From Chlorokybus atmophyticus (Eukaryota > Plantae > Mesostigma and Chlorokybus algae), in assembly GCA_009103225.1 (NCBI GenBank), contig RHPI01001132.1:424002-488001 (forward strand): 64,000 bases of DNA, in the 5' to 3' direction. A program made the translations under genes and the position numbers. Under the pieces are notes generated by a model. It was not told the DNA's origin. It did not search any database and saw only the letters and a list, made by a program, of their open reading frames with translations. The stretch's first letter is position 1. Every line of letters starts with the position of its first letter. Positions 12,240 through 64,000 of the stretch are shown piece after piece.

Positions 12240-15200
12240 CGACTAAGCGCCTTGGACGGAGAGTACCTGAAGAAGCAAATGCAAAGAGCCATGTACGGGG
12301 AGATGTTGGGATGAGGGCGCTGCTTTGAGAGAGTGGGCAGGGGCTAGACTTGGAGATAAAATACGAATGCCGCTGTGAACGCACCGGTGATTGCCTGCGT
12401 GTCGCCCAGCTTCATGCCATCTAAGTACATCACGCTGATCATGCATGCACTTGCAAGCCAAGAATCTTGAACAGCTGCAAGGTGGTGATGAGGGTGGGCC
12501 GGCCCTGTCGTATGCTGTGTGCGACGGGCATCACGATGACTGCTTTGCTGTGAATGGGCATGCCATCAACTGAGGCGTCTCCAAGCTGCACCAGCAGCTT
12601 GTCTGCCTGAGCCATCTCTTCCTCCTTGTCTTTAACCATTGCTAAAGCTTGTCCTGCGCCTGCTTGTGCTTGTCGTTTACTGTTGTACTGATATTGCTCG
12701 CGCCATGCATCCTTCGCTGCCTCGCCAGCTGTTGATTGGAGTCCACAAGCGCAGACCCATTCTTGTCGCTGGGTCTTTGCTGGAGGCTTCTTTTTTGGTG
12801 GTGGCGCATTCCACAACGCAATCACGCTGGCCTGCTTCAAACCTCCCGCATTATTTGTGCCGTCACTGCATATGAGTGTCACCCGACCCGCTGCCTTCAA
12901 GGTAGTAAGAATGACTTCTGTTTGCTCCGGCGACACTTGCGCAACGACTTGCACGTGAGGCACAACATCAGCAAGGGCCCCAATATTGTCCAGCATGGTG
13001 AGGCCGTCACCGGCCACGCAAAGGTCAAAAGATGCGGCTACACACTTTCTGCATCTCTAACGCAAAAAGGTATACGTTGGATTTCATCAGATGACAGCAA
13101 CTCGAACTCGGACATTCTGCCTGCGGCTGCTGCAATTGGTAAAGCAGGGTGGCCTTGCGCCCACTGAGTCAGCACCAACACGGGCTGCATGACAACGTGA
13201 ACGCGGCGTGGCACGCCGTCAACACCTGATCACCAGTGATCACGACCACATGCAAAGATCAGCGTCAACGAACACGAGAACACCGCAAAACCACCGAAAG
13301 TCGGATCACGCTCAACCTCATCCCGGTCTGACGCTTTGACTCCGCTCACCATCGTGTCACTGATGCATCTGTAGCCCAACGCAAGCACACGCGCGCCCTG
13401 ACGTGTGAGGTACTTGTACGCGCATCGCTGTAGCCTGCAGGCACGTCCTGCATGCCAAGGGCCAGCGCGCGATTTCAAGACACCCACATGGCGTCGGCTT
13501 TGACCATGCGGGCGATGACGGACGAGCGCTTGAGCTGCGACAAGAAGCGGTCGCGATGCACTTTCCTGATGGTGTTCGTGGGGGAACGCTTGCTGGCCAC
13601 AACGTCGCTGCCAGTGTAGATCCATGCGACATGCAATGCAGCGTTCTCCAGAGGGTCTTCCACCTGCCATAGGCATGTTGCACGGCGGGCTGACATCACG
13701 CAGACGCATGAAGGCACACTGACCAGCTTCGTGTCAACTCAGACCAAAGCATGGCAAACTGCCAATGTGTATATGACAGGCTCAGATAGTATGGTTGAAT
13801 CACTTTGCAACTCAGGCTTGTCTGCACCACTTACACCTTCAAACACCTGCGTGCAACAAGACAAAGCCTGTTGGGTGGCCAATAACAACAGCACACACAC
13901 ATTCATTTCCATGCCACATTGTACCATGTTGTCGCTAGTCAGCATGCGATGTTTTAATGGCTATGCACAGCTCCATTGGGTGGGATGACAGAGGTGATGA
14001 TCAACGAGCAGTTGAGCAGCAGCATGTACCTTGAGCGGGTGGGCTCCTCCAACCCTGAATACAGAAGACATCATATACATGGACCAGACCGTCACACATA
14101 CACACACACACACGCGCACGCACACACACACAATGCAGTGATTGCAAAGCACAGACCTTCATGAGCACATAGTATACGGGCATGAGCGAAGACTAGCAGG
14201 ACAAGGATGAACAGCCCGCTTTCCAAGTTGTTCGCGCTCATGGTCTCCGTGGAGAAAAGAATACGCATGAGCTTCCCTTGGGTGTCAAAAGTTCTGAGGA
14301 TGACTGCAATGCACCCGCCATCCGGGGCCTTTGATCGAGCATCCTACCCACAGAAAGGTGCCTAAATAGTTATGAGAAGCCTGGACAGAGCAACTGCTGC
14401 ACTGCAGCTGTGAAGCAAACTTGATTAGAGCGCACTTTGTCGGGAGTCTGTTGCAGTATCTTTGTTCCGCCGACCAGAACAGACAGCTTGTCCCGCTGTA
14501 CATTCAGCACCAGACTGCGTGAGCTCTAAGCTGATGCTGGAACCTGTCAACAAGCCTGTCAGCGTTGCAACACACACATGCACGCGCATGCGCAAACACA
14601 CGCACACACGTGTACACGCGCACACACGTGCACATATGCAAGCATACACAAACGGGCACAGACAGCAATGCAGCTTTAAGCTGAACTACCAACTTTCCAC
14701 TGTGGGTGAGACTTCCCGGTGAGCTAGGCCTCATTGGCAATGCACTTGCCACACAACAGCAATGCATCCGCTGGCAAAGTTCGCTCCTCACTTCCCGCAC
14801 CAGCAACATGCCGATTGATACAAGATCTCCGGGCAGCAGCTCCTCACCCTTCACCTTGACCCACCTGTACACCTGATGCATGTGTTCACATGCAATCAGC
14901 AGCAAACATACCAACCAGCAAGACGCATGCTGACTCACTTGCCACCGCACTGAGAGTGGAGCTCGGATGGGTTGGTTCACACACGCCGCAGCTCCATGAG
15001 ACAGCGTTGACGGCTATTAACAACTCAAACATCAACAGCAACGTCAATATGAACAGCGGGTACCGCCACAACTCATCAAGGCACCAAAGCCCAACACAGA
15101 AGACCTGCAAACACCAGGACATACATGCAGAAGAGCAGGTAAGTAAGTGTAATCGAAACATATTAGACAGATGCAAGCAGGACCATGAACGCAATCAAGC

Positions 15201-16416: not shown

Positions 16417-16478
<62 letters not shown>

Positions 16479-17252
16479 NCTCTCGCTCCCTCTCGCTCCC
16501 TCTCGCTCCCTCTCGCTCGCTCCCTCTCGCTCGCTCGCTCCCGCTCTCGCTCTCTCGCTCGCTCGCTCTCTCTCGCTCTCTCTCGCTCTCTCGCTCTCTC
16601 GCTCTCTCGCTCTCGCTCTCGCTCTCTCGCTCTCTCTCGCGCGCGCGCGCTCTCTCCCTCTCTCCCTCTCTCTCCCTCTCTCTCCCTCTCTCTCTCGCTC
16701 CCTCTCGCTCCCTCTCGCTCCCTCTCGCTCGCTCCCTCTCGCTCGCTCGCTCCCGCTCTCGCTCTCTCGCTCGCTCGCTCTCTCTCGCTCTCTCTCGCTC
16801 TCTCGCTCTCTCGCTCTCTCGCTCTCGCTCTCGCTCTCTCGCTCTCTCTCGCGCGCGCGCGCTCTCTCCCTCTCTCCCTCTCTCTCCCTCTCTCTCCCTC
16901 TCTCTCTCGCTCCCTCTCGCTCCCTCTCGCTCCCTCCCTCTCGCTCCCTCTCGCTCGCTCCCTCTCGCTCGCTCCCTCTCGCTCGCTCGCTCCCGCTCCC
17001 TCTCGCGCTCTCGTGCTCTCGCGCTCTCTCGCGCTCTCGCTCTCTCGCGCTCTCGCTCGCTCGCTCGCTCGCTCGCTCTCGCTCTCGCTCTCGCTCGCTC
17101 GCTCTCGCTCTCGCTCTCGCTCTCGCTCTCGCTCTCGCTCTCGCTCTCTCGCTCTCGCGCTCTCGCGCTCTCGCGCTCTCGCGCTCTCGCGCTCTCGCGC
17201 GCTCTCGCGCGCTCTCGCGCTCTCGCGCTCTCTCTCTCTCTCTCGCGCGCTC

Positions 17253-17291
<39 letters not shown>
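16417..17291. repeat. Compound (CT)n/(CTCG)n/(CG) microsatellite with an internal ~200-bp higher-order repeat
   Basis: Direct reading. The block at about 16480-16690 recurs at about 16690-16900. Confidence 0.95.
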
Positions 17292-17429: not shown

Positions 17430-19831
17430 AGCATATCCCCAGGGCTTTGACTCGCCAGTGGTGATCCGAGGTGCAGCCACATTCACTAGCTGCACATTTG
17501 AGGGCAACCAGGCAGCAGGTGCAGGTGGTGCCATATGTAACACGGGCAGTCTGACACTGAGACTCTGCCAATTCAGAAACAACCAAGCGGTGAGAGCGGC
17601 AATACCGCCTGCTTGTGTCCTCACTGCATCACTCCAAAACGACACTGCTGTAGCTCTGTAATTTCTCCCCGGTGTGCGCAGGAAGTCAACTTGCATGCTT
17701 ACTATTATTATAGGTCACGTCAACAAACTTGCGAGATGCTCTCATGAGTGTACCATAACATGTCTTTCTTACAACACCAAGGGGGTACGGTCTTCAGCAA
17801 TGGTGAATCAACCATAGAAGACTGCGAGGTTCACCAACTTTTGACGCGGGTGGACCTTGAGGATTGGGAGGACACATTGTTGTTGGCGAAATAGGGCTGC
17901 TGGTGGCCAAGCATTGCCATTTCTTCAAAGGCAGCAGTTCACAGGTCAGCCACGCCATCATCTCCCACTCATGGCCTGCGACTCCTGAAGCAGTAAATCT
18001 TTGGCAAGGACTCATTAGTAGCTTGCCCATTATAGCTTGCTGTTGTCAGGATGGCGGTGCTGTCAGCCTCTACAGCGCTGCGGAGTTTGATATCTGCTCT
18101 TTCCAAGACAACTCTGCGTTTGTGAGTCTGTGGAATGCGACCAAGTCACACATGCGCCTTATTAGTGAGAACTGTTCACAACTAACAGCTGAGTCCACGA
18201 TATAACATGAAGATCTTTTGTGCAGAATGCAGGTGGTGCTATCCATCAGCAATCTGGACGCTTAACCTTGAAAAACACCTAGTAAGCAAAAGTCTTGTGC
18301 TGCGTGTGTTTGCTGCTTTTTGGATTGAGATGACTGTGAAGTGCGTATCTCAGTGCTGATGTTGCTCGTCTCATTCTGGCTTGGCAGATTCACAACCAAG
18401 CTTACGATGGTGGCGCGTTGAGTTCAAACGACACAGGCTTGATTACTAACTGTTCGTTTGAGCGGAACTTGGTGAGTTACCAGGAGTCCATTACACGCAT
18501 ACTATACGCACGTGCATATGGTATGTGTGTAGTGGACTGCTGGTAACTTCAAGACGGGAGTGCACTATTGTCTGTTAGTGCGGCAAGTGCGCCTTATGCA
18601 TTGTATTTGTTGTGTAGTTTATCCATGTGTTCTTTCCTTGTGTGGTTCTCTCTCGACGCTCAGTACACGCGTATGTTGGCAATTGCCGCAGAGTCGCAAT
18701 CAGACAGGAGAAGCAATAGACGCCTTGGAGGCCGCTGACCTAACGATACAATTAACCAACTTCACTGGACGCTCATGGGGATGTTAATTAATGTCGTTTC
18801 TGCGCTTAGCAACGACACTCGCATTGTGGTGTCGGGCTGCAGATTCTATGCCGTAAGAGCATCTTCTTGCTTTGTCATAAGCGTATGATTGCGCATGTAT
18901 GCTTCGTGTGTTTGCTGTTGTATCATCTTTCTGGAGGTGAGCCTGTTTCCCCTCTGTTGCATGGTCTGTTATGTAAACTCACTGCTTTGCATAACAGATT
19001 AGATATATGCAAATGCCGCATCTGCTGCACTCAAAGACTTATACATAGTGGTCTGGTTGGCAGTGGAGGTGGCGCTGGTCTCTGCTCTCATTGCGCTGAC
19101 AGTCGTGCCAGTTGCCAGCATGGGGCCGGTGCGCATCGGCCCCTCACGGCTCAAAATGGCTATCCACTTCCTTCAAGTGGTGGCCCTGGCCTTCACCATC
19201 CAGCATGAATGGCCTGCGCCAATAGACTACATGACGGAGGCACTGGTGATCCTACTCTCTCAAAACCAGCTGCTGCCACTGGACTGCTACTTGTCTGGGT
19301 CTAGCAGCGACAAGGCGTTTGCAACCACAGTACTTTATGCTGTACTGCCATTTGTGGCAAACGTGCCTCTCGTACTGTTCTGGAGCATTTTGTGGTTTTG
19401 CTCTCAACAGCGCAAGCGGGCTGCATGGCCATACCGCAGGACTATCTCGCAGCGCAGCGTGTACCGAGCATAATCAGCGTGGAGTTTTTCCTTTGTCCTA
19501 TCACAGTAGCAAACTTCCTCGCCCTCTGCCACTCTATCCGTCCACGATTCTTTCTACAATCCAGATCAGGTGCACGCAGTTGTGCTCTTCCCTATCTTGT
19601 ACCTCTTGCCCTTGAGTGAGTGGCATGCAACCATGTCTTGATGCTGTGCTGCTCAAGAGGTGATGCGACATTATTGCTACAGGTGCTGGGGTTTTACTGG
19701 AAGCAGCAAATGAGCGTGAGGTGTTTCAAGGACAAGCACCTGGCATACGTGTTGGGACTGGGCATTCCTGGGTTGCTGATCTTTGTGAAAATGCTTCCCG
19801 CATGCGTGCTCTGGGTGCTGTATGCCAACCG
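17430..19831 (+). pseudogene. Degraded, internally deleted copy of the Pmp-like beta-helix / multi-TM gene A
   Basis: Exons VIRGAATFTSCTFEGNQAAGAGGAICN, DGGAVSLY..CSFQDNSA, AGGAIH and YDGGAL. 18498-18890 aligns with the reverse complement of about 63500-63918, and about 19010-19831 aligns with about 59168-60000. Frameshifts are present and the intervening exons are missing. Confidence 0.85.
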
Positions 19832-20673: not shown

Positions 20674-20752
20674 GGGGGGGGGGGGGGGGGNNNNNNNNNN
20701 NNNNNNNNNNNNNNNNNNNNNNNNNNNNNNNNNNNNNNNNNNNNNNNNNNNN

Positions 20753-26206: not shown

Positions 26207-28650
26207 CTCACTATTGTGTCCATTGTGCTTCAGTCATGCACAAAGCGAGTTTGGGCGTAATGTTGCATGCTTCAAACAAAGGTGTACGCGCCATGGACAG
26301 CTATCACAGTAGTGCCCAGCCCTACAAATGCAGGGGTGAGGGCCTTGCGGAGGGCAACTGCAACATTGTCGTTTGTGATAACCTGCTGCCGCTGAGGTGA
26401 GGGAAGTTTGCATTCCTTGAATGAACTCTGCTGAGAGCATGAGCAGAAGGAGAATGGAACTAAGGGAGGCAGGAAGAACAGCCATCCGATATAGAGAAGA
26501 AGAGTACAATTTTACACCCATGCCATCGTCTGCATGTTGCAGAGCTTGTTGGAGGCAAAGAGCCGGCACGCACGGGACATAAGCGTGAAGATGAATGCGA
26601 GTCCAAGAGACAACAAAACTTGCCGCTCCGTTCCAAACTGGCTTACAAAGACGAGCACGAAAATTAAGGCGAGCTTCGGCAAGCAAACAATGCACTCCCA
26701 GTAAAAGAATTTACGCTTGTACCCTGCGTAGAGAAACCCGTAGTACTCAGCTGTTGCTGCCGTGTGCAAGGAGTCCCGCTTTATGTACATTATGATGAAG
26801 GTGACGAGGGGGGTTTGCACACAAGAGATAATGATGCCGGGGATGCCAATCGTTGCCACCATCACCATGTGCGTGCCCCTGTAACAGCGCTGCTTCATGG
26901 CAAGCTCCCAGAAGCTGCCGACAGCTGAGGGTGGCACATTGGGGCCGTCACTGTTGACAGTTATGCATGAGAAGAGTGCCAAGATCACGTCATGACCGCC
27001 GGCCACAGGAAGAACTCCGCAACAATGACGCTCAACGCGTATCGCGGCTTCAAATAGTCTGCAAATGACGTCTCCTCCATCTGCTTGGGTCTTAGTGTCA
27101 ACTTGTGCAGCAGGAAACGGTGTTAAAGTCTCACAAGGTGCAACACAAAACAATGGCAGTCGTGACGCTACGTATATACCCATGTGGCGTGGAGGCAGTG
27201 CCATCGTAGAGACTGGAAAACGGCAGGGAGGGCTACAGCAACGAAGGGGAGGGCAGCGAAGGCAAGGAGGACCTGGAAGGTCTTGTCCAGGTGCAAGCCG
27301 TTGTCAAGGAGGCAGTTCGAAGAGAGGAGAGGTATGCCAATCGTGCAGGCGCTCGAGATGACCCCCAATGCACGTGACACAAATGCAGGTCAGCGCAGCT
27401 GTACAGCGAAGGTGATGGAGGTCACCTTAAGGTACGACATAAGCAACTTCGCCATTGCAGGAATTGCTACTCCCCGCGTCACTCCCATATGCTCGTCAAC
27501 CGCATCGAGTGGCAGATCTGATGCTGAACGGATGTTCAACACAACCGCCAGTACGGAAACAAGCGCAACCCCGTTCATAGCAAAGGCCGTAAGAAACTTT
27601 CTCCCACAGCGCTTGCATTTAAAGCTGCCGACCTATTGGTGACAAGCAAGCTGTCACCAAACTGTCAAGTGTTGCCACAGTGCAGCGAACAAAGGTAGAT
27701 AAAGAACAACAATTCTCTGCGAAGTTGCCTGGCCAGATAGGCCGTATCCTTCCTAGCAGACATTGCACATGTTGCCTTTCTACCCCGTTGCACACTGAGC
27801 ATCTTCCGTCCAGGTCCCGTTTTCAATCATGTCCTTCAGCAACTATAGAGGACAGCTCAGACACCTTGGAGTAAACTGTACGCAAATGACTGCAATTTAA
27901 ACACACAGCATTACATGTTAACTTACGCTGTCGCGGCCTATGAATGAACATGCTCTCCCAATTCGGCATTGCACAACTTGATTAACCAACAAGGCAGACT
28001 GCTTGTAGCCAACCTGCGCCACAACCTAGAGGCAAGCACCCTGCCAGTCAGCAAGAAACGTCCCAAAAGTGTTCATGCAGTCGCTACATGATTGACCCAA
28101 TACTGTTACTCACTTGTGCACCACCGTAGCAGGTTGCAAACTCTAGGCATTGCAAGCAAATCAGGTTGTTTGGATCAAAGCTGATAGACAGAATACCATT
28201 GGTTGGTGAGTTTGCACCTTCATGCCTTTGCTCACAGAAACCACCGTAATGGCACTGCCTTGCATACACAGACATGTTCTTCCTCAAGTACAGTATATAA
28301 ACACCTGTACATTGGCTGCTGGCAGGGAACGCACAAATCGCCTTGATCATTGGTGTGCTCACCCTGGATTGGTGATGTAAAGAGTATGGCAACACCATTA
28401 CGTAAGAGAGAGATGTGTATCACAGGTGTCAGTGTTGTGCATACCAGCACGCAGGCTTAGACTCCAACATGGATGCGTGCTTCCAATTCAAGGACGGTAA
28501 TATTAATTGTACTCACGTCAGGACTGGAGCGCACAGCAATTGCATTGTACTGTGCAACACCACCTGCTATGGCCTTTTAGCAGCCAGCAAGGCCACGAGG
28601 GGCAAGCAGACCTTCTTGTCTTTACTTGCTCGGTTGTGCATACGAGTGCG
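26207..28650 (-). pseudogene. Degraded 3' half of Pmp-like multi-TM gene B (paralog of 49658-52138)
   Basis: NSDGPNVPPSAVGSFWELAM..YGFLYAGYKRKFFYWECIV, AMAKLLMSYLKVTSITFAVQL and GILSISFDPN..CLQC..ATCYGGAQ. Frameshifts relative to the intact copy; 5' end replaced by a chromovirus fragment. Confidence 0.88.
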
Positions 28651-29050
28651 CAGCAGTGGTGAGCATTGGGCAACACGTGTTGCCCAGCACGAAAAACATA
28701 CGGATCAAGAGGCGGGGAAGCTTCTACCCTAGTGGATTGGCCCTTTTGAAGTGCTTGGTCCCATTGGCGTCGTGGCGTATAAGCTTCGCCTCCCGGAGCA
28801 CTTTAAGATATATGGCGTGTTCCATGTGTCGTTGCTAAGGTAGTACAAGAGTAATGGAAGCGTCAAACCCCCACCTCTACCCGAGTTGGTGGATGGTGAG
28901 TGGGAATATCAGTAGAGGCAATCATTAACACGCCGTCCTCATGGTAGAAACCATTCTCCCGAGTACTTCGTACAATGAAAGGGCTACGGTGTAAAACACA
29001 ACCCAGGGTCTTAACACTATGCATGTAACTGTACATTAAAATTGGAACTT
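28650..29050 (+). mobile_element. Chromovirus-type Ty3/Gypsy fragment (integrase C-terminal GPY/F region + start of chromodomain)
   Basis: VL.STKN, KLLP*WIGPFEVLGPIGVVAYKLRLPEHFKIYGVFHVSLL and PPPLPELVDGEWEY..EAI. Confidence 0.8.
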
Positions 29051-42444: not shown

Positions 42445-43170
42445 ATCACTGTCATGAGTGCTTCGACTCTCTTGGCTGCGCCTTGCACGCGTAGACACCA
42501 TAGTGGCAATTCGAGCAACACCACCAACAAGATGCACATGCATATTGCAGCCTTGTGTTGCAGCTATATAGGCCCACATATGTCAACTAGTAACAAGGTT
42601 AACCATTCCCCACCCTTTACACGCGGTTTCAACATGAATAGCACAAAGTGCACTTTTCATCTAATGCGTAACGATATGTGTGGTTTGGCTTTATGGGCCA
42701 TAACTTCATGCCTAGGCGGCCTAGTAATGTGATGTAAGATGTATAGTAGACTACATTCAATCACCTACCCAATGCAAACCACCGCTCCGCCAAAGCTGCT
42801 CTCATGGCTTATTGGCGAGGAATCAAAGTTAGCACTACACACACGCGCCAACTGCAACATTTCAAATCAATTTGTATTTGCGCCCGAAACGCTAACCAAT
42901 GAGCGTCTCGAGCTGGTGGTGTGCTCCTTGTGACCAATGAGAGCACACTACCAAGTCTTGGCCCAATTGGCCGCGGCAAACAACATCTACAGCCAAAAAC
43001 TACCGGCCATAGGCCAAGTGTCCGAAATTAAGAAATGTCCGAAGTTAGGACACAGTACCCTACTTCGGCATGCTGCGAGCCCAAGTTCGCCTTAGCAAGC
43101 CCAGCTGCGATGCCTCAAAGCTGGAGGCTGCCATGTGGCGCATCAACGCGGCGGGGCGGCGACGGGCAGC

Positions 43171-52138
<8,968 letters not shown>

Positions 52139-53390: not shown

Positions 53391-55299
53391 AGGGGATACC
53401 TATAACAGGAGGGAGCTGAGGACACAATATGGTAACTACGTATACATATACATACTATTGGTGACTTATAAACCACTTGAGCAGATGTAAGCGAGAAAGG
53501 TCATGAGTGTCATTCTTACATCGATTCCACTTGCTTGGATTGACACTACATGCTAGTGCCAATGCACAAACATGGCCTTTGTCTGTATTGGCACATGCTA
53601 AACATTTTGTACAACTTGCAAGTTGTATAAAATGGTGTTTTGAGGTGACGTGCTCATTTACTCGCCCTTCCGCAATGCCATCACTAATAGATGCACGCCA
53701 GCGGGATGCAGTAGGAGTAGGAGCTCTGTCTCCTCCCCTCTTCTTGCTTCCCTTCTCTACCCTCCCACTTATTTGCAGCGTCCGCTTCTTTCGTTTCTCC
53801 CGTTATTTCCTCTCCTTCTGTTCATGCTTTGCGATGTGCTCCTTCTTGCTTTCCAAGACTCCCCCCTTACCTCCTGCACCTCTATTCCCGCTTTCCTGCC
53901 TTTCTACGCTTCCTACTAATTCCTTTTTGAACTTTAAACTTTTTATACTCGTACTCCTTTATGTCCACGAACCATAATTTGTGGTGGTGTTAGTCCGTTC
54001 TCATATCAAAAGATTCAATCTTTGTTTTCAGCAATAGCAAATGAAGGGCTTATCATGCTACAGTGTTGTGAATTGTAACGCGTATGCTGGGTTTGAAGCA
54101 GTGCCTGTGTCGCGTTACATAGGGTCGAGAGTCACTGCAACGATACCACGACCAATCTGCTGGTCGGGCCTTGGTAAACTTATGCACAAGCACTTAGAAC
54201 TTACATATGGAAGTCACACCAGCATCACCGGCGCAGCACCTCGCAGGGGAAGATGCAGCTCAGCACCGAGGGAGTAGAGGATGACCACCGGCCTCTCCAG
54301 TCAGCTCGAGCCCCAGGTACGCACTCAACATACCCACGTGCACAACACTACAATACCACACCCAACAAGGGATGAAGGGGAGAGCCCCTTTAACAGCTAA
54401 CAACTAGGCACCCCATGCACAAGTGGCCCTCTTGTAAGGCAAACACACACCGATGTCTTAATCAACACAGATCCCTACTCAAGAATGCAACGTAGCATTT
54501 ATACCACATGCTGCTCTCCCGACCTAGAACACAGGATGTTCAAGGCCATCTAGGCCTTGAACCTATGCGCTGACCTTATTCCAACATCGGAACCAACAAG
54601 CTCCACCTTGGGAGTATCAAACCACCTCCGATTCTCATAGGATCAACAATCCTACCTCGGAATCAGAAACTCAGGCTCCCATAGTACACATGTACTTGCG
54701 GATTGCCCGCATGCACCACTTGCCTTGCGATTGTCACACCTGTGGCAAATCGCACTACCACAGTACAGATCCTGTGGTTTGCCAACTTGGCTCACTTATT
54801 TTGCAATAGCCACTTTGTGTGGCAACTTACAGTACAATAACAAAGGCTAACATGCCATAGGCATTGACCAGCTCTGTGCTAGCCCAGCATCAATGCCTTG
54901 TGTAGTTTATCAATACCCAAGGCCCTCACAGGCTCAAGAGTGGACCGCATGAGAGCACACACCATAAGCACTTACACCCGCTTAGGAAATGAAACATCCC
55001 ACTTGCTCCCTTCCTACTAACATAAGTAAGGGACAAAGAATGATTTTTGCTAGCCTGATAGGCGTGACAGTCACACTGTCTAGAGGAGCTGCAGCAGCTG
55101 TATGACAAGAAGACAGTAAAGCAATAGCAAAGAATTCCTCCTTGCTTCCATAAAGTCATACGTACTGATGTATGTGTACACAAGTTGCACGTTGTACATC
55201 CACAGTGAGCTAGTGTACATGCTCTGCTTAATGGATAAGCAACATAGTCAACAAGCCACCCCCCCTTTTGGCTGTCATGAGTCCCTTCATCAGAGCTCA

Positions 55300-58200
55300 C
55301 TTCTTTAGCGCATGTTGGGTGGTCTATTGTTACGGCCATCTGTTGCACCGATACTTCTCCATGAGTACATCGTCCTTGCGGTTTGTTCGACAATAGCACT
55401 GCATGCCTTTGTCGCATCCGTCACACACCATCATCTTCGCATCGTCGATGGCGCTGCCACACTTCTCACACCTCTTGCTGCGCGAGGGGCGCGAGTGGTG
55501 GATGCTGTCGAAACCTGTCACCTATGGCAAGTGCCAAGGGACACAATGATCATACCATATTCATAATACCACGTAATTTAGTCTTTTCCCGACCTGCTTC
55601 AGCACGCCTAGCATGCCGCTATAAAAGACTTTCAGCACTTTATATGGCTCCCCTAACGCTGGTGTGAAGCGTGTCGTGCAAGGCTTCCATGCGGTTAACA
55701 AAGTCTCATTGTCAAGGGCTTTTCCTTTAGTTAAGGTTTTCACCTTGACATCATTTAACATGACCCTAATTGGTTAATTATATGCCAAGCTCCATTGGTT
55801 CCTCGCTCTATGCTTAAGACCCTTATATAAGTCTAATTTAAGTTATGAGTCCCAACGGGTGATATCCACGACTCTTACCTAATTGGTTGATATCAACTAG
55901 ATTGGTCAAAGCTATGGCTGATGTGGCTGAGTGAGTGAGTTGGGTTGAAAGTTCTTTACGACACGACAGTCACGGCGGCGGCGTGGGTAGGGTCGTTGGC
56001 GTGGGTGTTAGGGTAGAGGATTTAGGGGGAGTTTGGCATTTCCCCTTTGCACTGATGCTTTAGAACGCCGTTGTCATTGCTTGTGAAACATTACGATAGC
56101 CCTTGATAAGTTATAAATCCTATGAAAACCTCAACATGTAAGCGCCTTTGCTTACACGGCTTAATGAAAGATCTCGACGTAACTTAAAAGCCGCTGCGAA
56201 CTCGTTTGTCGCGGTGCTGTGCGATGCACAGGTTGTTCAAGGCCATGAGTATCAGGTGCTTGAACAGGGATGCGCAATTTGTAAGGTAACAGCTCATCTC
56301 GTCGAGGTTGTCGAATATGTTCACAATCTAGTCCACTTCTCGTTGTGCGCGAAACGGAGCTGCTTTGCGACAATAGGTTGCGCCCAAATACAAGATAGTA
56401 TCCATGGGCTTTGGTTGCGCATAAATGCTTGCTTGGACAACCGGCATCTCAAAGCAACCCATGGCATGTGGTGCTCTCAAGTATCTTTACGGTGCTCCAA
56501 CACATGCTTGCGCGCGCGGCCTTATTGAGGGTCTGAACTGTACGCTCGGCGAGGTCATCTGCTTGCAGATGGTCTCTCGATTTGCGGCAATGGTCAATGC
56601 AGCAGCGGCAATCAGAGTAGTGAACTCCCCTCCAATCAAAGTCCTTTGGTTGGTGATGATCTCGGCGCAGCAGAAACGGCGCAGAACATGGTTGAGGAAG
56701 GCACGAGCCACCCCCTGCTGCTCTTGTTGAGTAGAGGCACTAATTCCACCCACTTGCAGCACTCAATCATTACAAGGATGTAACGGTTGCCTCGCGCTAA
56801 GGGGAACAAGCCCTTTGGAATGTTAAAGCCCCACCTGTACAACAACCCGAGATGGAAAGCTTCCCTCCCTTAAGGGGGTTCAACTTGAAGATGCCGTTGC
56901 GAGTGTTGAGGCTGGCCTTAACCATATCGCACTAATAGCGGTTGTGCCCACATGCTCCTGCACATGCTTGCACAAGCCATGCCACCAGTGCCGCGCTTGC
57001 TCAAGCCGGGCTGGCGTTGCGATGAACACCAAAGTGTCCCAACTCTATGTGGAGAGACTAAACGATGCCCTTCCGTGCCTACGGCCTGGCCACCGTGCGA
57101 GATGACCTCCTTTTCGTCAGGTATGGATGCATTGATATAGCTTCTCATCTGTCCATTAATAGTGCTAATGGCACTGGTTGACGCGGTCCTTTTCCCGAGC
57201 ACTTAGTCCTGCGGGGAGGTGTCCGGTCTAAAGAAGAGTCAACGCGTGTTTGCCCAGCGCAATGTCCCATCTGCTGTCGGTGGTAGGCAGGGCCTCATCG
57301 GCGACGGCGACGTTTTCGAGCACGAGGAGGCACTCATAATTGTTGGCTGGCACGGGCGTGTCTGCTGTCAATCACATTGACGTAGCGGCCTGCCTTGCGT
57401 CTTGCACGCAGTGCTGCAACATCAAACATGGTGGCAACACTTGGAGGTGGTGCTAGAGGCCCGAGTTGTATCAAGCTCTTGTGACATCGTTGATGGAGAA
57501 TCAAGGGTTACCACTCAGTCCATCCACGGCTTGGTCGGCGAGGTTGGCGCGGTGTTGACTTTGAGGTCGTGCTCTTGCAGCAGCAAGGCCCACTTTCTCA
57601 ACTTGCTTGTCAAGTGTTGGTTTGTTATCAGCCAGCATATGGGCTAATGGTCATGATGAGTTGGAACTGCATGTTAAACAAGGGCCGGAAGAAGAAGATA
57701 GCCCACACAACTGCGTGACACTCCCGTTCGTAGCTGCTGTAGTTGGCTTCGGCGATGTTGTTGCTCCGACAGGCGTAGGAGACCAAGCGCTCCTCCTTGT
57801 TGTCGTCATGCTGCACGAGGACAGCTCCAGACCTCGATTTGCTTCAATTTATGTATAAGATGAAGGGCTTTGTGTAATCGGGGCGCTAAAGGATGGGGGC
57901 TGTCGTCAGCCGCTGATTTTACATCATTGAAGCCTTGTGCTATGGCTCCTTGCACTCGAACTCGACGTCCTTCTTTGAAAGCTCGTTGAGTGGGCGCTTC
58001 ATGAAGTTTTCTACAAACGTGCAATAGCAATTGGTCAGCCTCAAGAGGCATGAAGCTGCGTGAGGTCCATGAGGGTTGGGATAGACACTCATGCCTCCAT
58101 CTAGGCCTGTAGTACATATATACACGCCGTTGGGCACAATAATGTACTCAAATAGGGCACCTTGTGGGTAAACGTGCACTTGTCGGGGTACACTCATCCA

Positions 58201-58450
58201 CACCTTCTTAACTTAAAAAGTTTGAAACCTTTTCAACACCTTGATGTGTTGAAGGTGCTTATTTGCAATGTTGCAAAAGATGAGGATGTCATCGCTGTAG
58301 CCACGCTTGAAGTTGCACCACTTCAGTGCCTTGTCCATGACGCGCTGGAACTTGGCAGGCGCGTTCCTGTCCTCCACATTCACTTGTGTGCACGTTGTGT
58401 ACTGCATGACATTATGGGACAATGAGACCACTTGCTTCTTCCACCATCTG
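55300..58450 (-). mobile_element. Degenerate Ty3/Gypsy remnant with C-terminal PHD finger (inverted paralog of 20829-23400)
   Basis: NAPAKFQRVMDKAL...YSDDILIF, YACRSNNIAEANYSSYERECHAVVWA, LFPLARGNRYILVMIE, AEIITNQRT..GEF and CEKCGSAIDDAKMMVCDGCDKG. Confidence 0.85.
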
Positions 58451-58746
58451 TGGAAGCGACCACACTAGGCATAGAGCAAAGATTGGTGCTTACAACAGAC
58501 TCTCAAGCTGTTATACATTGTACCACATCATACATAGAGCCAGTGAGACTGTTGAATGAAAATAAGACGAATGCGATTGCAAGCTAGCCTTGGTAATTGA
58601 GCTAGCAGCGAAATGATGGATCCGCAAGCCATGCCTTCCTGTTTTATCCTCTGTTATGCTAGCAGCTTGCTAAGCAGGTAAACTTGCAGCTAGTAACACA
58701 AGTAAACTGTGTATGTACTGGTGCATCTGCGTCCGCATCATCATTA

Positions 58747-61700
58747 TCAGCGGGCACGTATGTCTTCGATGGCCCCTTGTGCAACAGTCAAGAGTGCGAT
58801 CACAATGCTGACCATCAACCCAACAGTGAAGAACACATCAATGATGATCTCCAGCCTTTTGGTCGGGTGAAGAAAAACCAGCATGCCCATGAAGATAAGG
58901 TAGCGGGCAGCATTGTAGGCAAAATCGCTTGATTGTTCATCCCTCTGCTGTGCATGCGGTTGAACTTGCCATTGCAAGACTGCAAACATGGACACAATCC
59001 CGAAGGCAGTGGCGTTCTGAGCCTGTCCACCAAGCACGAGCACGCAGTTGATGATGAGGGTAAGCTTCTCCAAGTGCATTGCACCTTCCCATAGGAAGGC
59101 ACTTGGTGCGTACATTGTGTAGTAAAAGCCCCAGCAGCGCATAACTTCGGGCCCGTCATGCCGTTTACGGTTGGTATACAGCACCCAGAACACGCATGCG
59201 GGAAGCAGTATCACAAAGATCAGCAACCCGGGAACGCCCAGTCCCAACACGTATGCCAGGTGCTTGTCCTGGAAACACCTCACGCTCATGTCGCTCTTCC
59301 AGTAAAACCCCAGCACCTGTGGCACAATGTCGCATCATATTTGCGCCATTCACTCAAATGCAAGAAGTACAAGATGCAGAAGAGCACAGCTGCGTGCGTG
59401 CACCTGATCTGGATTGTAGAAAGGATCATTGACGGACAGAGCGCGAGAGTCTACACGCTGGCAGCTGAAGAGTGCAAGGAAGTTTGCCACTGTGATAGGC
59501 CAAAGGAAAAACTCCACGCTGATTATGCTCGGGAGAATGCGCTGTGAGATGGCCCTGCGGTATGGCCATGCAGATCTTGCAACCCCCTTGCGCTGTTGAG
59601 AACGAAACCACAAAATGCTCCAGAACAGTACGAGAGGCACGATTGTCACAAATGGCAGTACAGCATAAAGTACTGTGGTTGTAAACGCTTTGTCACTGCT
59701 AGACCCAGACAAGTAGCAGTCCAGTGGCAGCAGCTGGCTTTGAGCAAGTAGGATTGTCACCAGTGTCTCCGTCATGTAGTCTATTGGCGCAGGCCATTCA
59801 TGCTGGATGGTGAAGGCCAGGGCCACCACTTGAAGGAAGTGGATAGCCATTTTGAGCCGTGAGGGGCCGATGCGCACCGGCCCCATGCTGGCAACTGGCA
59901 CGACTGTCAGCGCAATGAGAGCAGAGACCAGCGCCACCTCCACTGCCAACCAGACCACCATGTACACGGCTTTGAGTGCAGCAGATGGGCATTTGCGGCA
60001 CTGCGTCTTGCCAACGAACCGCGTCAGGCCATAGCCTTCAGCGCAGACAGCACACACATTGCCAGCGTATCCCTCAGCGCACTGCAGCGCATGATAGCGT
60101 GTAGTATCAAGTGCTTCACCAGCTAAGGCTGAGGTGTTGAGGAGAGCGGTGCGGGCGCTGTAAGCACAAGCCTTTGAGTTTGGACACTCCACCATCTCAC
60201 GGGAGTAGAAACTTGAGCGCCAAAAACCTTCTTGCGGCACCACCACAGCACCGCCATAGCAGAAGGCGTTCGGCGGGCATAGCGTGCACGGCACGGACGA
60301 ATTCCAGCTGAAGGTTGGAGGGCTGCAGAGAGTACAGCTGCTGTCTGTCACAACAACATGTTGCAGTTAACAACTGAGGCGCTGATTACGTTAGCAGACC
60401 ACTACACTAGTGCAGATCAGTATACATGCATACAGCCCTAGCCCTGGCCTACTATGGTAGTGAGTCTGGCAGTACCGTTTTCAGCCGCAACTTCGCCTGG
60501 AACGCACTCGCGTATCACGACCACAAGGGGAACGCTAGCAACGACTTGCGCCCCGGTTGTTGACAATTGCAAACGGTTGGAACCTGGAGTGCCATTGACA
60601 TTGAGATTGGAGAAAGTTGCCACTCCAGCAAGTGTTGCGGTCGAGACCTCGCCAGAAAGGTTGCAGCTTCCGTCAATCACCTGCAAGGTCATGACCATGA
60701 AGAATCAACGTTTGACCACCGCTAATGCCATTGGTGCTGATGATAGGAATGCAGAGAGTTCCAATGCAGGCTGCGTTGTCTGCAATTACCTTTGTGGTGA
60801 TAACTGTGCCGTCGTAGGACGTCAACGTCACAATCTGATTGAACATGTCAACAAGGTAGACGCTGGCATTGAGCAGGGGCTGCTGGCTGGCTTGATCCGT
60901 AAAGGCTGGTTGGGAGGTGCGCAACGCAACGGGCGGTGAAGCGAGCACATCACCATAGCGGTCTGCGCGATTGCCAAGCCAGCCTGGGCAGCCCTCAGCA
61001 GAGTGGTTCAGTTGCCGCCCGTCCTGTGTCAATACGCGCTACACTCAAGCATAGACACCAACGCACTTGAACATAGGCAGCAGAGCCTACAGCTGCACTC
61101 CTTGCGTAGTCAATCAGTGCAAAGCTGCAACCCTCTTACTGGGGAACAGAAGATGTCGGGAAGGTGGTTGCAGTAGATAGCGCCACCCTTGACATGAGCA
61201 TGGTTGCCAGAGACAGAAGGAAGGGAGTCCAATCTTGGGCAGGTCGTAGAGTTGAAGCAGAGAATAAACAATGCACCTCCATCGCTGGCGCTGTTATTTG
61301 CGAGGGTCAGGTTCCGCATGGAGACATTGGCTGACTGATCGCACAGCGACGTGTCGATAGCCACCGCACCGCCCTGCTCGGCTGTATTGCCGAGGAAGAT
61401 CGAATCCTGCAAGAGCAGTCAATCAACTACTGCAGAGCGCGCGCACAAGGCAATACAAAGTACATCAAAGAGGCATGTGTAATGCAACCATGCCTTGGTG
61501 ATACATGAGCGCAAACCACTTCTCAAAGTCTGTAGGGTAATGATGCAGCGACGCATGTGCCAGACACCTTGCTGCTGTCATGCAAATGCCGGTCCACAAC
61601 AGGTACGCCAAGACGCATCTGGCACACGCACCTGTATCAACGCAGATGTAGGCCAGGTAAAACAGCTTGTGCTGAGTGAAGCGTCGCCACCGCTGTGATA

Positions 61701-63723
61701 AAGCGCGCCTCCAATCTGAGGCCAATGTCGTCGTAAGCCTCAGATGACATTGCGCATGGGTCAAGACTAACATACCGCACAACTGTTGTTAGTAAACGTA
61801 GAATTGGTGACAACAACATCGCCAAAGTCATTGCTGATAGCCCCTCCCGTTCGGAAGCTTCCGGCCTGGAAGGCAATGAACTGTCAGTGAGTGCATGCAA
61901 GAGCCTTACGAGTATGGTGAATGCTTGACATGGCACAACCCTGGTTGACAGTTGCCCGCTGTTAATTGTGTCTCATGTGTGGCGTGCGTGCAAGCTGTGT
62001 GTATCATGTGAGCAGTACCGTGCAAGCATTGTCGAGGAGCGTGCATCCTGTAACAGTGAGCAAATTATCTATGGCATAGTTGTATCGCACGCGTATGTCG
62101 TTCCCCCCCCTCTTTATCTGCAAATGCAAAGGGCTGTGAACAACAGGGAAATGATGCTTTTAGCAAGTGCGCTCGTATAGTGTGGCGTGGCTGCAACTCA
62201 CATGCAGGCCATCATTGCAGATCGCGCCACCAATCTGGTAAGGAGGCACGTTCATATAGTATCACCAGCAGGTCTTCCCAGCAAACACTGGACAGTACAC
62301 GTGCGCAAAATGCCGCATGTGATCCTTGTACCTGAGCCACATTTGCAACAAACGAGGAGTCTTTTAGCTTCAGCCTGTGTTCGCTCACTATCGCTCCGCC
62401 ACGAGCCTGGGAGGCAATTGTGCTGGCATTTGGCATTCCTTTTGCAGCGATGTAATATGCTACGAAGTGCATCAAACAGCACGCATACTTGCGCGGTGTT
62501 TCCATTAAAGGTGCATGATGCAATGGTCGTGGCGCTCTCCACAGTCAGATTGTCAGCACGAACATGGACTGCGCCAGAATCCCTCTGCATAACAAGTGTT
62601 GCACGAGGCTGATTGTCAAGCAGTAGGATGATGATATTGACTAATCTGGTATGAGACGAGCAGATTAAGGCAACAGGATGAACATCAACTGACCAAGCTC
62701 AAGAGCAGTAACAGATGATGCTTACAGCAGCAAAGTTGCTGGTGAAGTTGCAGCGAGAGGCAACTAGCGGGCAATCCTTTAGGTAGATTGCACCTCCACT
62801 GTCTAGGGCTGTGTTGTTTATGAATAGCGTGTTGTCAACATGCAGAGACTGTGCGGCGTCACAGAGGATAGCCCCTCCTTGCTGCAAGCACAAACGTCTT
62901 TTCAGCGCAACGAATTTCAACATGACTCTGCAGCATGATGCCCAATGATGTCTTCTCAAGGTGAATCCAAAGCACGCTCAATTGAAATTGCATTGTGCAT
63001 GGTGACCATAGTTGGCATGGCATAACGTAGAATGTGGCACTTTACATATACACGCTTACTGCAGCGGTATTATTTCCGAAGACGCAATTGGATATCTTCA
63101 CGATTGCATGCGCACCAGAGGCCCGTACAGCTCTTACCTGAAGAGAACATGCACAGGACACACTCAACCTCAGAACTGAAGAGGACAGGAGGAGGTAGCT
63201 GCCAAGCAAAGTGGAGTGCTGCGCAGCGTGAATGAACACATGAAGTGCTGAGCTGGACTCACTCTGCTGTTCACGACCATGCTGTTGTTCATTTCAAGAA
63301 CGCCGTAAACTGCAAGCAACCAATCGTCAGCCTGCGCCCCCCCACCGTCCAGTGCTTGTCCATCAATGTAAGTTTGGTCCACAAAGAGCCTGCTCTTCTC
63401 CGCGATAGACGCAATCAAGTCACCCTGCATAACAGACCACACAACAGAGGAGGCACAGGCTCAATCACCTCCAAGTGGATGATACAACAGCAACTACAGG
63501 AAGAATACATACGCAATCATATGCTTATAAGAAAGCAAGAAGTTGCTCTTACGTTTGCATTGAATCTGCAGCCCGACACCACAATGCGAGTGCCATTGCT
63601 CAGCGCAGAAGCGACATTTATTGCAAACCTTCCCAATGACCCTCCAGTGAAGTTGGACAATTGTATCGTTAGGTCAGCGGCCTCCAAGGCGTCTATAGCT
63701 TCTCCTGTATAAAAATCGGCATT
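58747..63723 (-). CDS. Pmp-like beta-helix / Cys-rich / multi-TM gene A, 5'-truncated by the telomere
   Basis: Open exons with GGAI/GGAV repeats, CTLCPPNAFCYGG..GFWR, CAEGYAGNVCAVCAEGYG, KMAIHFLQV and WGFYYTMY.PSAFLWE; stop at 58747. The first surviving acceptor is at 63724; no signal-peptide exon or promoter remains. Confidence 0.8.
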
Positions 63724-63918
63724 CTGCGGCAATGGCCAACACACGCATGTACTGAGTGTTGAGAGAGAGCCACTTCACACAAGGAAAGAACATGGAAGCA
63801 CTGCACACCGAATACAATGCATAAGGTGCACTTGCTGCACTAACAGACAGTAGTGCACTCCTGTCTTTTGGTCATCAGCGGTCCACTATATACATACTCT
63901 ATGCACGTGCATAATATG

Positions 63919-64000
63919 GGGTTAGGGTTAGGGTTAGGGTTAGGGTTAGGGTTAGGGTTAGGGTTAGGGTTAGGGTTAGGGTTAGGGTTAGGGTTAGGGT
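63919..64000 (+). repeat. Telomeric repeat (TTAGGG)n, G-rich strand running to the window end
   Basis: About 13.5 perfect GGGTTA units to position 64000, in the orientation expected at a right chromosome end. Confidence 0.95.

Follow-up and report, generated by a model that had tools for sequence, protein, structure and literature searches.

The 64,000-nucleotide stretch of the Chlorokybus atmophyticus genome analyzed here (hereafter, the window) closes with telomere repeats that directly abut an intron of a protein-coding gene, the first part of which is missing. We regard it as probable, if not strongly so, that this is a genuine chromosome end, at which a terminal deletion was followed by telomere addition well after the gene had been duplicated. 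The preliminary description of this DNA had pointed to the lack of any subtelomeric buffer, and this still stands: no subtelomeric element lies between the repeats and the intron of what was once a longer gene.

The last 82 nt of the window (63919 to 64000, plus strand) are filled by an array of 13.7 GGGTTA units with 100% matches, which is perfect from its first unit and shows no degenerate units at the junction (TRF). Furthermore, the motif TTAGGGTTAGGG gave 12 overlapping matches, all within 63922 to 63999, compared with 0.09 expected by chance; the remainder of the 64-kb window had none. Read 5' to 3', the G-rich strand points to the end of the window, as it does at the right-hand end of a chromosome. 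In a published survey, the telomere motif of C. atmophyticus is CCCTAA and not the plant-type CCCTAAA (PMC8287931), and the (GGGTTA)13.7 array on the plus strand is made of this same repeat, as a healed end should be. Additionally, as a fixed tiling would rarely stop within such a tract, the fact that the window stops 82 nt into it suggests that the assembled piece itself probably ends there, and the window end would then be the physical end of the molecule.

Homology between the terminal copy of the gene (gene A) and an internal paralog in the same window runs to the last base before the repeats, as the preliminary description had claimed. Both blastn and a global alignment carry it to ...ATG at 63918/18498; beyond this point, the terminal tail reads GGGTTA and onward (GGGTTAGGG), and the paralog reads CGTGTAATGG. 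The break-point equivalent in the paralog falls between 18497 and 18498, and its earlier placement 26 nt into the intron behind the exon ending at 18471 is confirmed by the GTGAGT donor at 18472. That exon (P5, in phase 0) ends in ...NCSFERNL, and the next exon of the paralog begins after an AG near 18697. On the minus strand, the equivalent downstream exon of gene A begins at 63723, after ...CCGCAG. Thus, 195 nt of the broken intron are retained in the terminal copy, whereas the initial 26 nt of that intron are gone, along with all sequence farther upstream. The repeats therefore abut unique, nonsubtelomeric sequence that once continued, with the continuation read from a proxy, the 82%-identical paralog, and not from an allele or orthologue. 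At the join itself, ...ATATG is followed by GGGTTA, giving a run of four Gs; pairing of the broken end with the telomerase template may have involved a single G, or TG at most, an overlap at chance level. The features of both copies are collected in Table 1.

Table 1. Coordinates of the terminal gene, its internal paralog and the sequences that flank them (window positions)
Feature	Position	Strand	Remarks
Telomere repeat tract	63919-64000	+	TRF, motif count; motif agrees with PMC8287931
Residual intron upstream of gene A exon 1	63724-63918	-	81.8% identical to paralog intron 18498-18700
5'-truncated gene A	58747-63723	-	15 inferred GT-AG exons; stop TGA 58749-58747; 1,086 open codons
Gene A exons 1 to 5	63723-63553, 63424-63263, 63137-63060, 62881-62726, 62584-62489	-	Inferred
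Gene A exons 6 to 10	62406-62332, 62234-62202, 62117-62019, 61865-61776, 61715-61632	-	Inferred
Gene A exons 11 to 15	61406-61140, 61023-60790, 60680-~60474, ~60344-59404, 59316-58750	-	Inferred
Paralog head relics	17443-18471	+	PMP-type units; absent from gene A
Paralog relics P1, P2, P3	17443-17589; from ~17782; 18050-18121	+	P2 frame-broken
Paralog relics P4, P5	18226-18281; 18388-18471	+	P4 phase-inconsistent
Paralog intron matching the broken intron	18472-18697	+	Alignment, splice signals
Rest of the internal pseudogene	18698-19831	+	E1 equivalent, deletion junction, E14 and E15 equivalents
Dead Ty3/gypsy relic	55196-58432		Collinear in both duplication arms (partner 24303-20840); 74-77% identity

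The two copies belong to one collinear inverted duplication, in which 55196 to 63918 matches 24303 to 18498 at 74 to 86% identity when the last 10 kb are compared with the rest of the window by blastn. Within it, the gypsy relic forms the block of 74 to 77% identity, 59168 to 59996 matches 19831 to 19009 at 85.6%, and the last block, 63428 to 63918, matches 18973 to 18498 at 82.2%. The terminal copy has 3.4 kb (59997 to 63427) that are absent from the internal copy. The arms lie tail to tail, the distal one ends in the telomere, and the 31-kb spacer between them holds other genes. Introns diverge by 17.2% between the copies (Jukes-Cantor 0.195), and exons are 87 to 94% identical. In the exon encoding the membrane domain, 59353 to 59996 and 19009 to 19640 are 93.6% identical and share about 70 consecutive residues, between flanking introns of 82 to 85%; the likely cause is either strong constraint in the past or a patch of gene conversion between the arms.

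Gene A was modeled as 15 exons, E1 to E15, nearly all of them in phase 0. The preliminary description had stated that the surviving exons are still open, and in our model all 1,086 codons are; it is important to consider that the exons were chosen from reading frames, motifs and splice signals, a procedure that selects open frames by construction, and that strong evidence for open frames, independent of exon choice, comes only from the two long exons. Gene A has no start codon or signal peptide, and no in-frame ATG precedes exon 2. An alternative first exon within the residual intron was considered and rejected, as it would also lack an in-frame ATG. One exon, 62234 to 62202, is very short. 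It belongs to a repeat unit (62160 to 62234, minus strand) in which the full-length donor, at the position expected from paralog exon P5 (...TTG|GTGAGT), reads CT and not GT; if the consensus GTGAGT located 33 nt into the unit is used, the exon has 11 codons. The CT donor may be a first sign of decay, or the short exon may be genuine.

As for the product, Chlam_PMP (Pfam PF02415) matched gene A at 62699 to 62959 (28.9 bits) and 61110 to 61412 (40.6 bits) and the paralog at 17458 to 17661 (26.5 bits), so all three exons score above the gathering cut-off of 20.6 bits and can be assigned to the family. A GGA[ILV]...N.A motif is repeated across the ectodomain exons. The large exon carries a Cys-rich stretch with a weak, sub-threshold match to DUF7630, and the eukaryotic proteins that a language model places next to it are hypothetical ones, of which some have ephrin-receptor-like domains. 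Many hydrophobic helices are encoded by the large exon and the last one. We infer a surface-receptor-like protein that combines an ectodomain of Chlam_PMP repeats with a Cys-rich region similar to ephrin receptors and a domain crossing the membrane several times. Neither the 333-residue ORF of the large exon (59350 to 60351) nor the ORF of the first surviving exon had a match in word-based protein searches of a length-filtered collection that apparently lacks this genome. A scan of the 64-kb window at Rfam gathering thresholds gave no match.

The internal copy is a pseudogene. Its E1 equivalent carries deletions of 9 and 4 nt, its E14 and E15 equivalents carry indels of 1, 2, 3, 4, 9 and 23 nt, and its 3' end has been replaced by a retroelement/poly-G block. 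Further upstream exons had been described in this copy, and PMP units are indeed present at 17443 to 18471, but they are partly frame-broken relics. These units were also considered as displaced copies of the missing 3.4 kb; this was rejected, since only the generic motif is alike and none of them matches an exon of gene A. At the 3.4-kb deletion, the two edges are bridged by a 35-nt filler (18974 to 19008; flanks 18960 to 19020) that contains GCATAACAGA, the reverse complement of TCTGTTATGC, which is present in the terminal copy at the left edge of the deletion. The filler looks like a product of snap-back templated synthesis during end joining, in a repair of the polymerase-theta type.

In view of this decay, the proposal that the ancestral gene survives in the two broken copies taken together was not upheld. 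Neither copy has a start codon or a signal-peptide exon like that of the intact family member at about 43.1 kb, and the internal one has been reduced to a pseudogene by frameshifts, by the 3.4-kb deletion and by the retroelement at its 3' end. A first exon or signal peptide of the internal paralog was searched for upstream of an 875-bp CT-rich block and was not found. This block (16417 to 17291), with a higher-order period of 212 bp, lies just upstream of the paralog head relics. Proximal to it, ORFs on the minus strand at 12400 to 15000 include a stretch ...LLPGDLVSI... reminiscent of P-type ATPases and would represent an unrelated gene.

Two more distant family members are found in the window, one at about 26.6 to 28.9 kb (minus strand) and one at 43.1 to 52.1 kb (plus strand). 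The latter is intact and opens with a signal-peptide-like ORF at 43135 to 43266. It carries a perfect (CT)125 at 43797 to 44047, early in the gene, and a CT microsatellite may be a common feature of an early intron in this PMP-repeat family. Altogether, four genes or pseudogenes of one family, interleaved with retrotransposons, occupy the last 47 kb before the telomere (17443 to 19831, plus; 26600 to 28900, minus; 43135 to 52138, plus; 58747 to 63723, minus).

The decay expected of gene A was estimated from the between-copy ratio of indels to substitutions, the stop-creating fraction in gene A codons and the splice sites. Had gene A decayed neutrally ever since the duplication, approximately 34 disabling lesions would be expected over the 1,086 inferred codons, and none was seen. 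For E14 and E15 together (approximately 500 codons), about 13 lesions are expected under neutrality, and again none was seen. The selection-free period of gene A is bounded at less than about 0.9% divergence, that is, under a tenth of the time of the lineage (95% confidence). Ka/Ks between the copies was 0.69 over the 302 shared codons, a small sample that indicates weak constraint only; this is about the value that would be expected if one copy drifted while the other was constrained. The lack of lesions in gene A against a prediction of approximately 34 implies that the truncation would be much younger than the duplication, or else that the gene is still intact in most cells. The deletion had been described as recent, and it would be so only relative to the duplication, which is itself old, with 17% intron divergence.

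These results can be arranged in a history of two separate events. An old inverted duplication would have copied the gene along with a dead gypsy element, after which the internal copy would have decayed while the distal copy remained under selection. Much later, a break distal to E1 would have removed the promoter, the start and the first exons of gene A. The end would have been resected to ...ATATG-3' within the intron, and telomerase, rather than recombination, would have added TTAGGG repeats de novo, leaving gene A headless and probably dead. The long exons that are open in gene A, E14 and E15, have frameshifted equivalents in the paralog, which supports this history.

It is unlikely, in our judgment, that the repeats are instead an interstitial telomere-like tract within the intron, left for example by a break repair with telomerase-made filler, at which the assembly stopped; the gene would then be intact, with its front on another scaffold. 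Only 82 nt of repeat are visible, and the assembly is scaffolded, with N gaps at simple repeats. Moreover, a search of public sequencing runs for this DNA returned two low-depth DNA runs and no RNA run; when 58000 to 63930 was used as a query, their contigs were identical to the window, in pieces, at 58699 to 62153, and none covered 62158 to 63930. A search of metagenome contigs for an exact 35-mer beside the junction also gave no match, which weighs against our main reading in general. Against an interstitial tract, the array is perfect and has the polarity of an end, whereas interstitial repeats, which have unique sequence on both sides, are often degenerate; here the far side falls beyond the window. 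The window also ends inside the array, suggesting that the piece ends there. The sequencing design bears on the same point. A published Illumina-only assembly used libraries of 170 bp to 20 kb, with mate pairs of 2 to 20 kb, at 775x (PMC7027972); if this is the assembly at hand, its mate pairs should have bridged a short internal tract, which favours a true end.

The N gaps in the window, at 16479 (1 nt), 20691 to 20752 (62 nt), 22397 (1 nt) and 44048 (1 nt), all fall in homopolymer or dinucleotide runs. The restriction of gaps to simple repeats fits the Illumina-only assembly (PMC7027972); it also means that the piece is a gap-filled scaffold in which the lengths of those repeats are unreliable.

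A second alternative is that the junction is an artefact of the assembly or library, or that healing was real but confined to a sub-population of a long-cultured clonal strain in which most cells keep the intact gene. Healing in culture is common in other organisms (PMC5550746; PMC12636532), the scaffold was assembled from short reads, the junction lies outside the stretch covered by read contigs, and fully open frames in gene A are what would be expected if the gene were intact in most cells. However, many concordant reads must underlie a consensus contig of very high depth, and a random chimera would not yield both the right telomere polarity and a clean join. We therefore consider this alternative, in either form, quite unlikely.

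Inverted duplication with terminal deletion by breakage-fusion-bridge is well known from McClintock's work on maize and from human inv-dup-del 8p. The end described here resembles such products in its inverted arms, the distal one of which ends in a healed telomere, and differs from them in that the arms are old and unequally decayed and are separated by a 31-kb spacer. A one-step origin of this kind, in which the distal arm arose by fold-back as a mirror copy of the internal gene and the resulting dicentric snapped at the 18498 equivalent, with immediate healing that left gene A headless from birth, fits the tail-to-tail geometry but is very improbable, because the arms differ by 17 to 26%, making the event old, yet gene A carries none of the approximately 34 lesions expected; because the internal arm is riddled with lesions, which mirror arms of equal age should not show on one side; because the spacer, with its other genes, is long for a fold-back; and because a truncated gene A would have no start codon or signal peptide to explain continued selection. 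The evidence thus favours two separate events, a duplication and a much later terminal deletion healed by telomere addition.

Chromosome ends of this sort have precedents. In the Plasmodium falciparum 3D7 reference, four ends lie inside var genes and were accepted as healed, a view later confirmed with long reads (PMC5550746). As at the Chlorokybus end, the repeats run straight into a gene of a subtelomeric surface-protein family, no telomere-associated element intervenes, the gene is left as a pseudogene, and the same hallmarks sufficed to identify the events in the reference sequence by itself (PMC5550746). The P. falciparum events differ in that long reads verified them, that they were also induced in experiments, and that their junctions lie in coding sequence (PMC5550746); in Chlorokybus, the junction is intronic, the comparator is a diverged paralog, and the event is known from the assembly sequence alone. 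Among green algae, truncated subtelomeric elements abut telomeres in variable phase in Coccomyxa and Ostreococcus, a pattern interpreted as deletion with subsequent repair (PMC8287924), and for Auxenochlorella a chromosome fragment with a putative de novo telomere has been described (PMC12636532). These cases are similar to ours in that a telomere joins truncated sequence, but what is truncated in most of them is shared subtelomeric sequence rather than a gene for a protein. The conserved Sultan/Spacer architecture of Chlamydomonas has no counterpart at this Chlorokybus end. Healed ends that truncate genes are therefore already well known, green algae included, and the Chlorokybus end would be an ordinary event of that kind.

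A broader proposal, which we think improbable at present, is that Chlorokybus, apparently asexual and long cultured, lacks a buffering subtelomere genome-wide. Erosion or breakage would then recur at its chromosome ends, which telomerase would cap anew inside genes or transposons, sometimes after inverted duplications, and which would act as a continuing sink for genes of the receptor family. The value of the present observation would grow only if most scaffold ends of the Chlorokybus genome looked alike, and a general absence of a subtelomeric buffer would be the more interesting result. If confirmed, the end described here would be a base-resolved case of chromosome healing in the earliest-branching streptophyte lineage, and it would indicate that telomerase in this lineage needs hardly any G/T overlap to start on a broken end. 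A further implication would be that surface-receptor-like genes are clustered at the chromosome ends of this alga and are disappearing as those ends erode.
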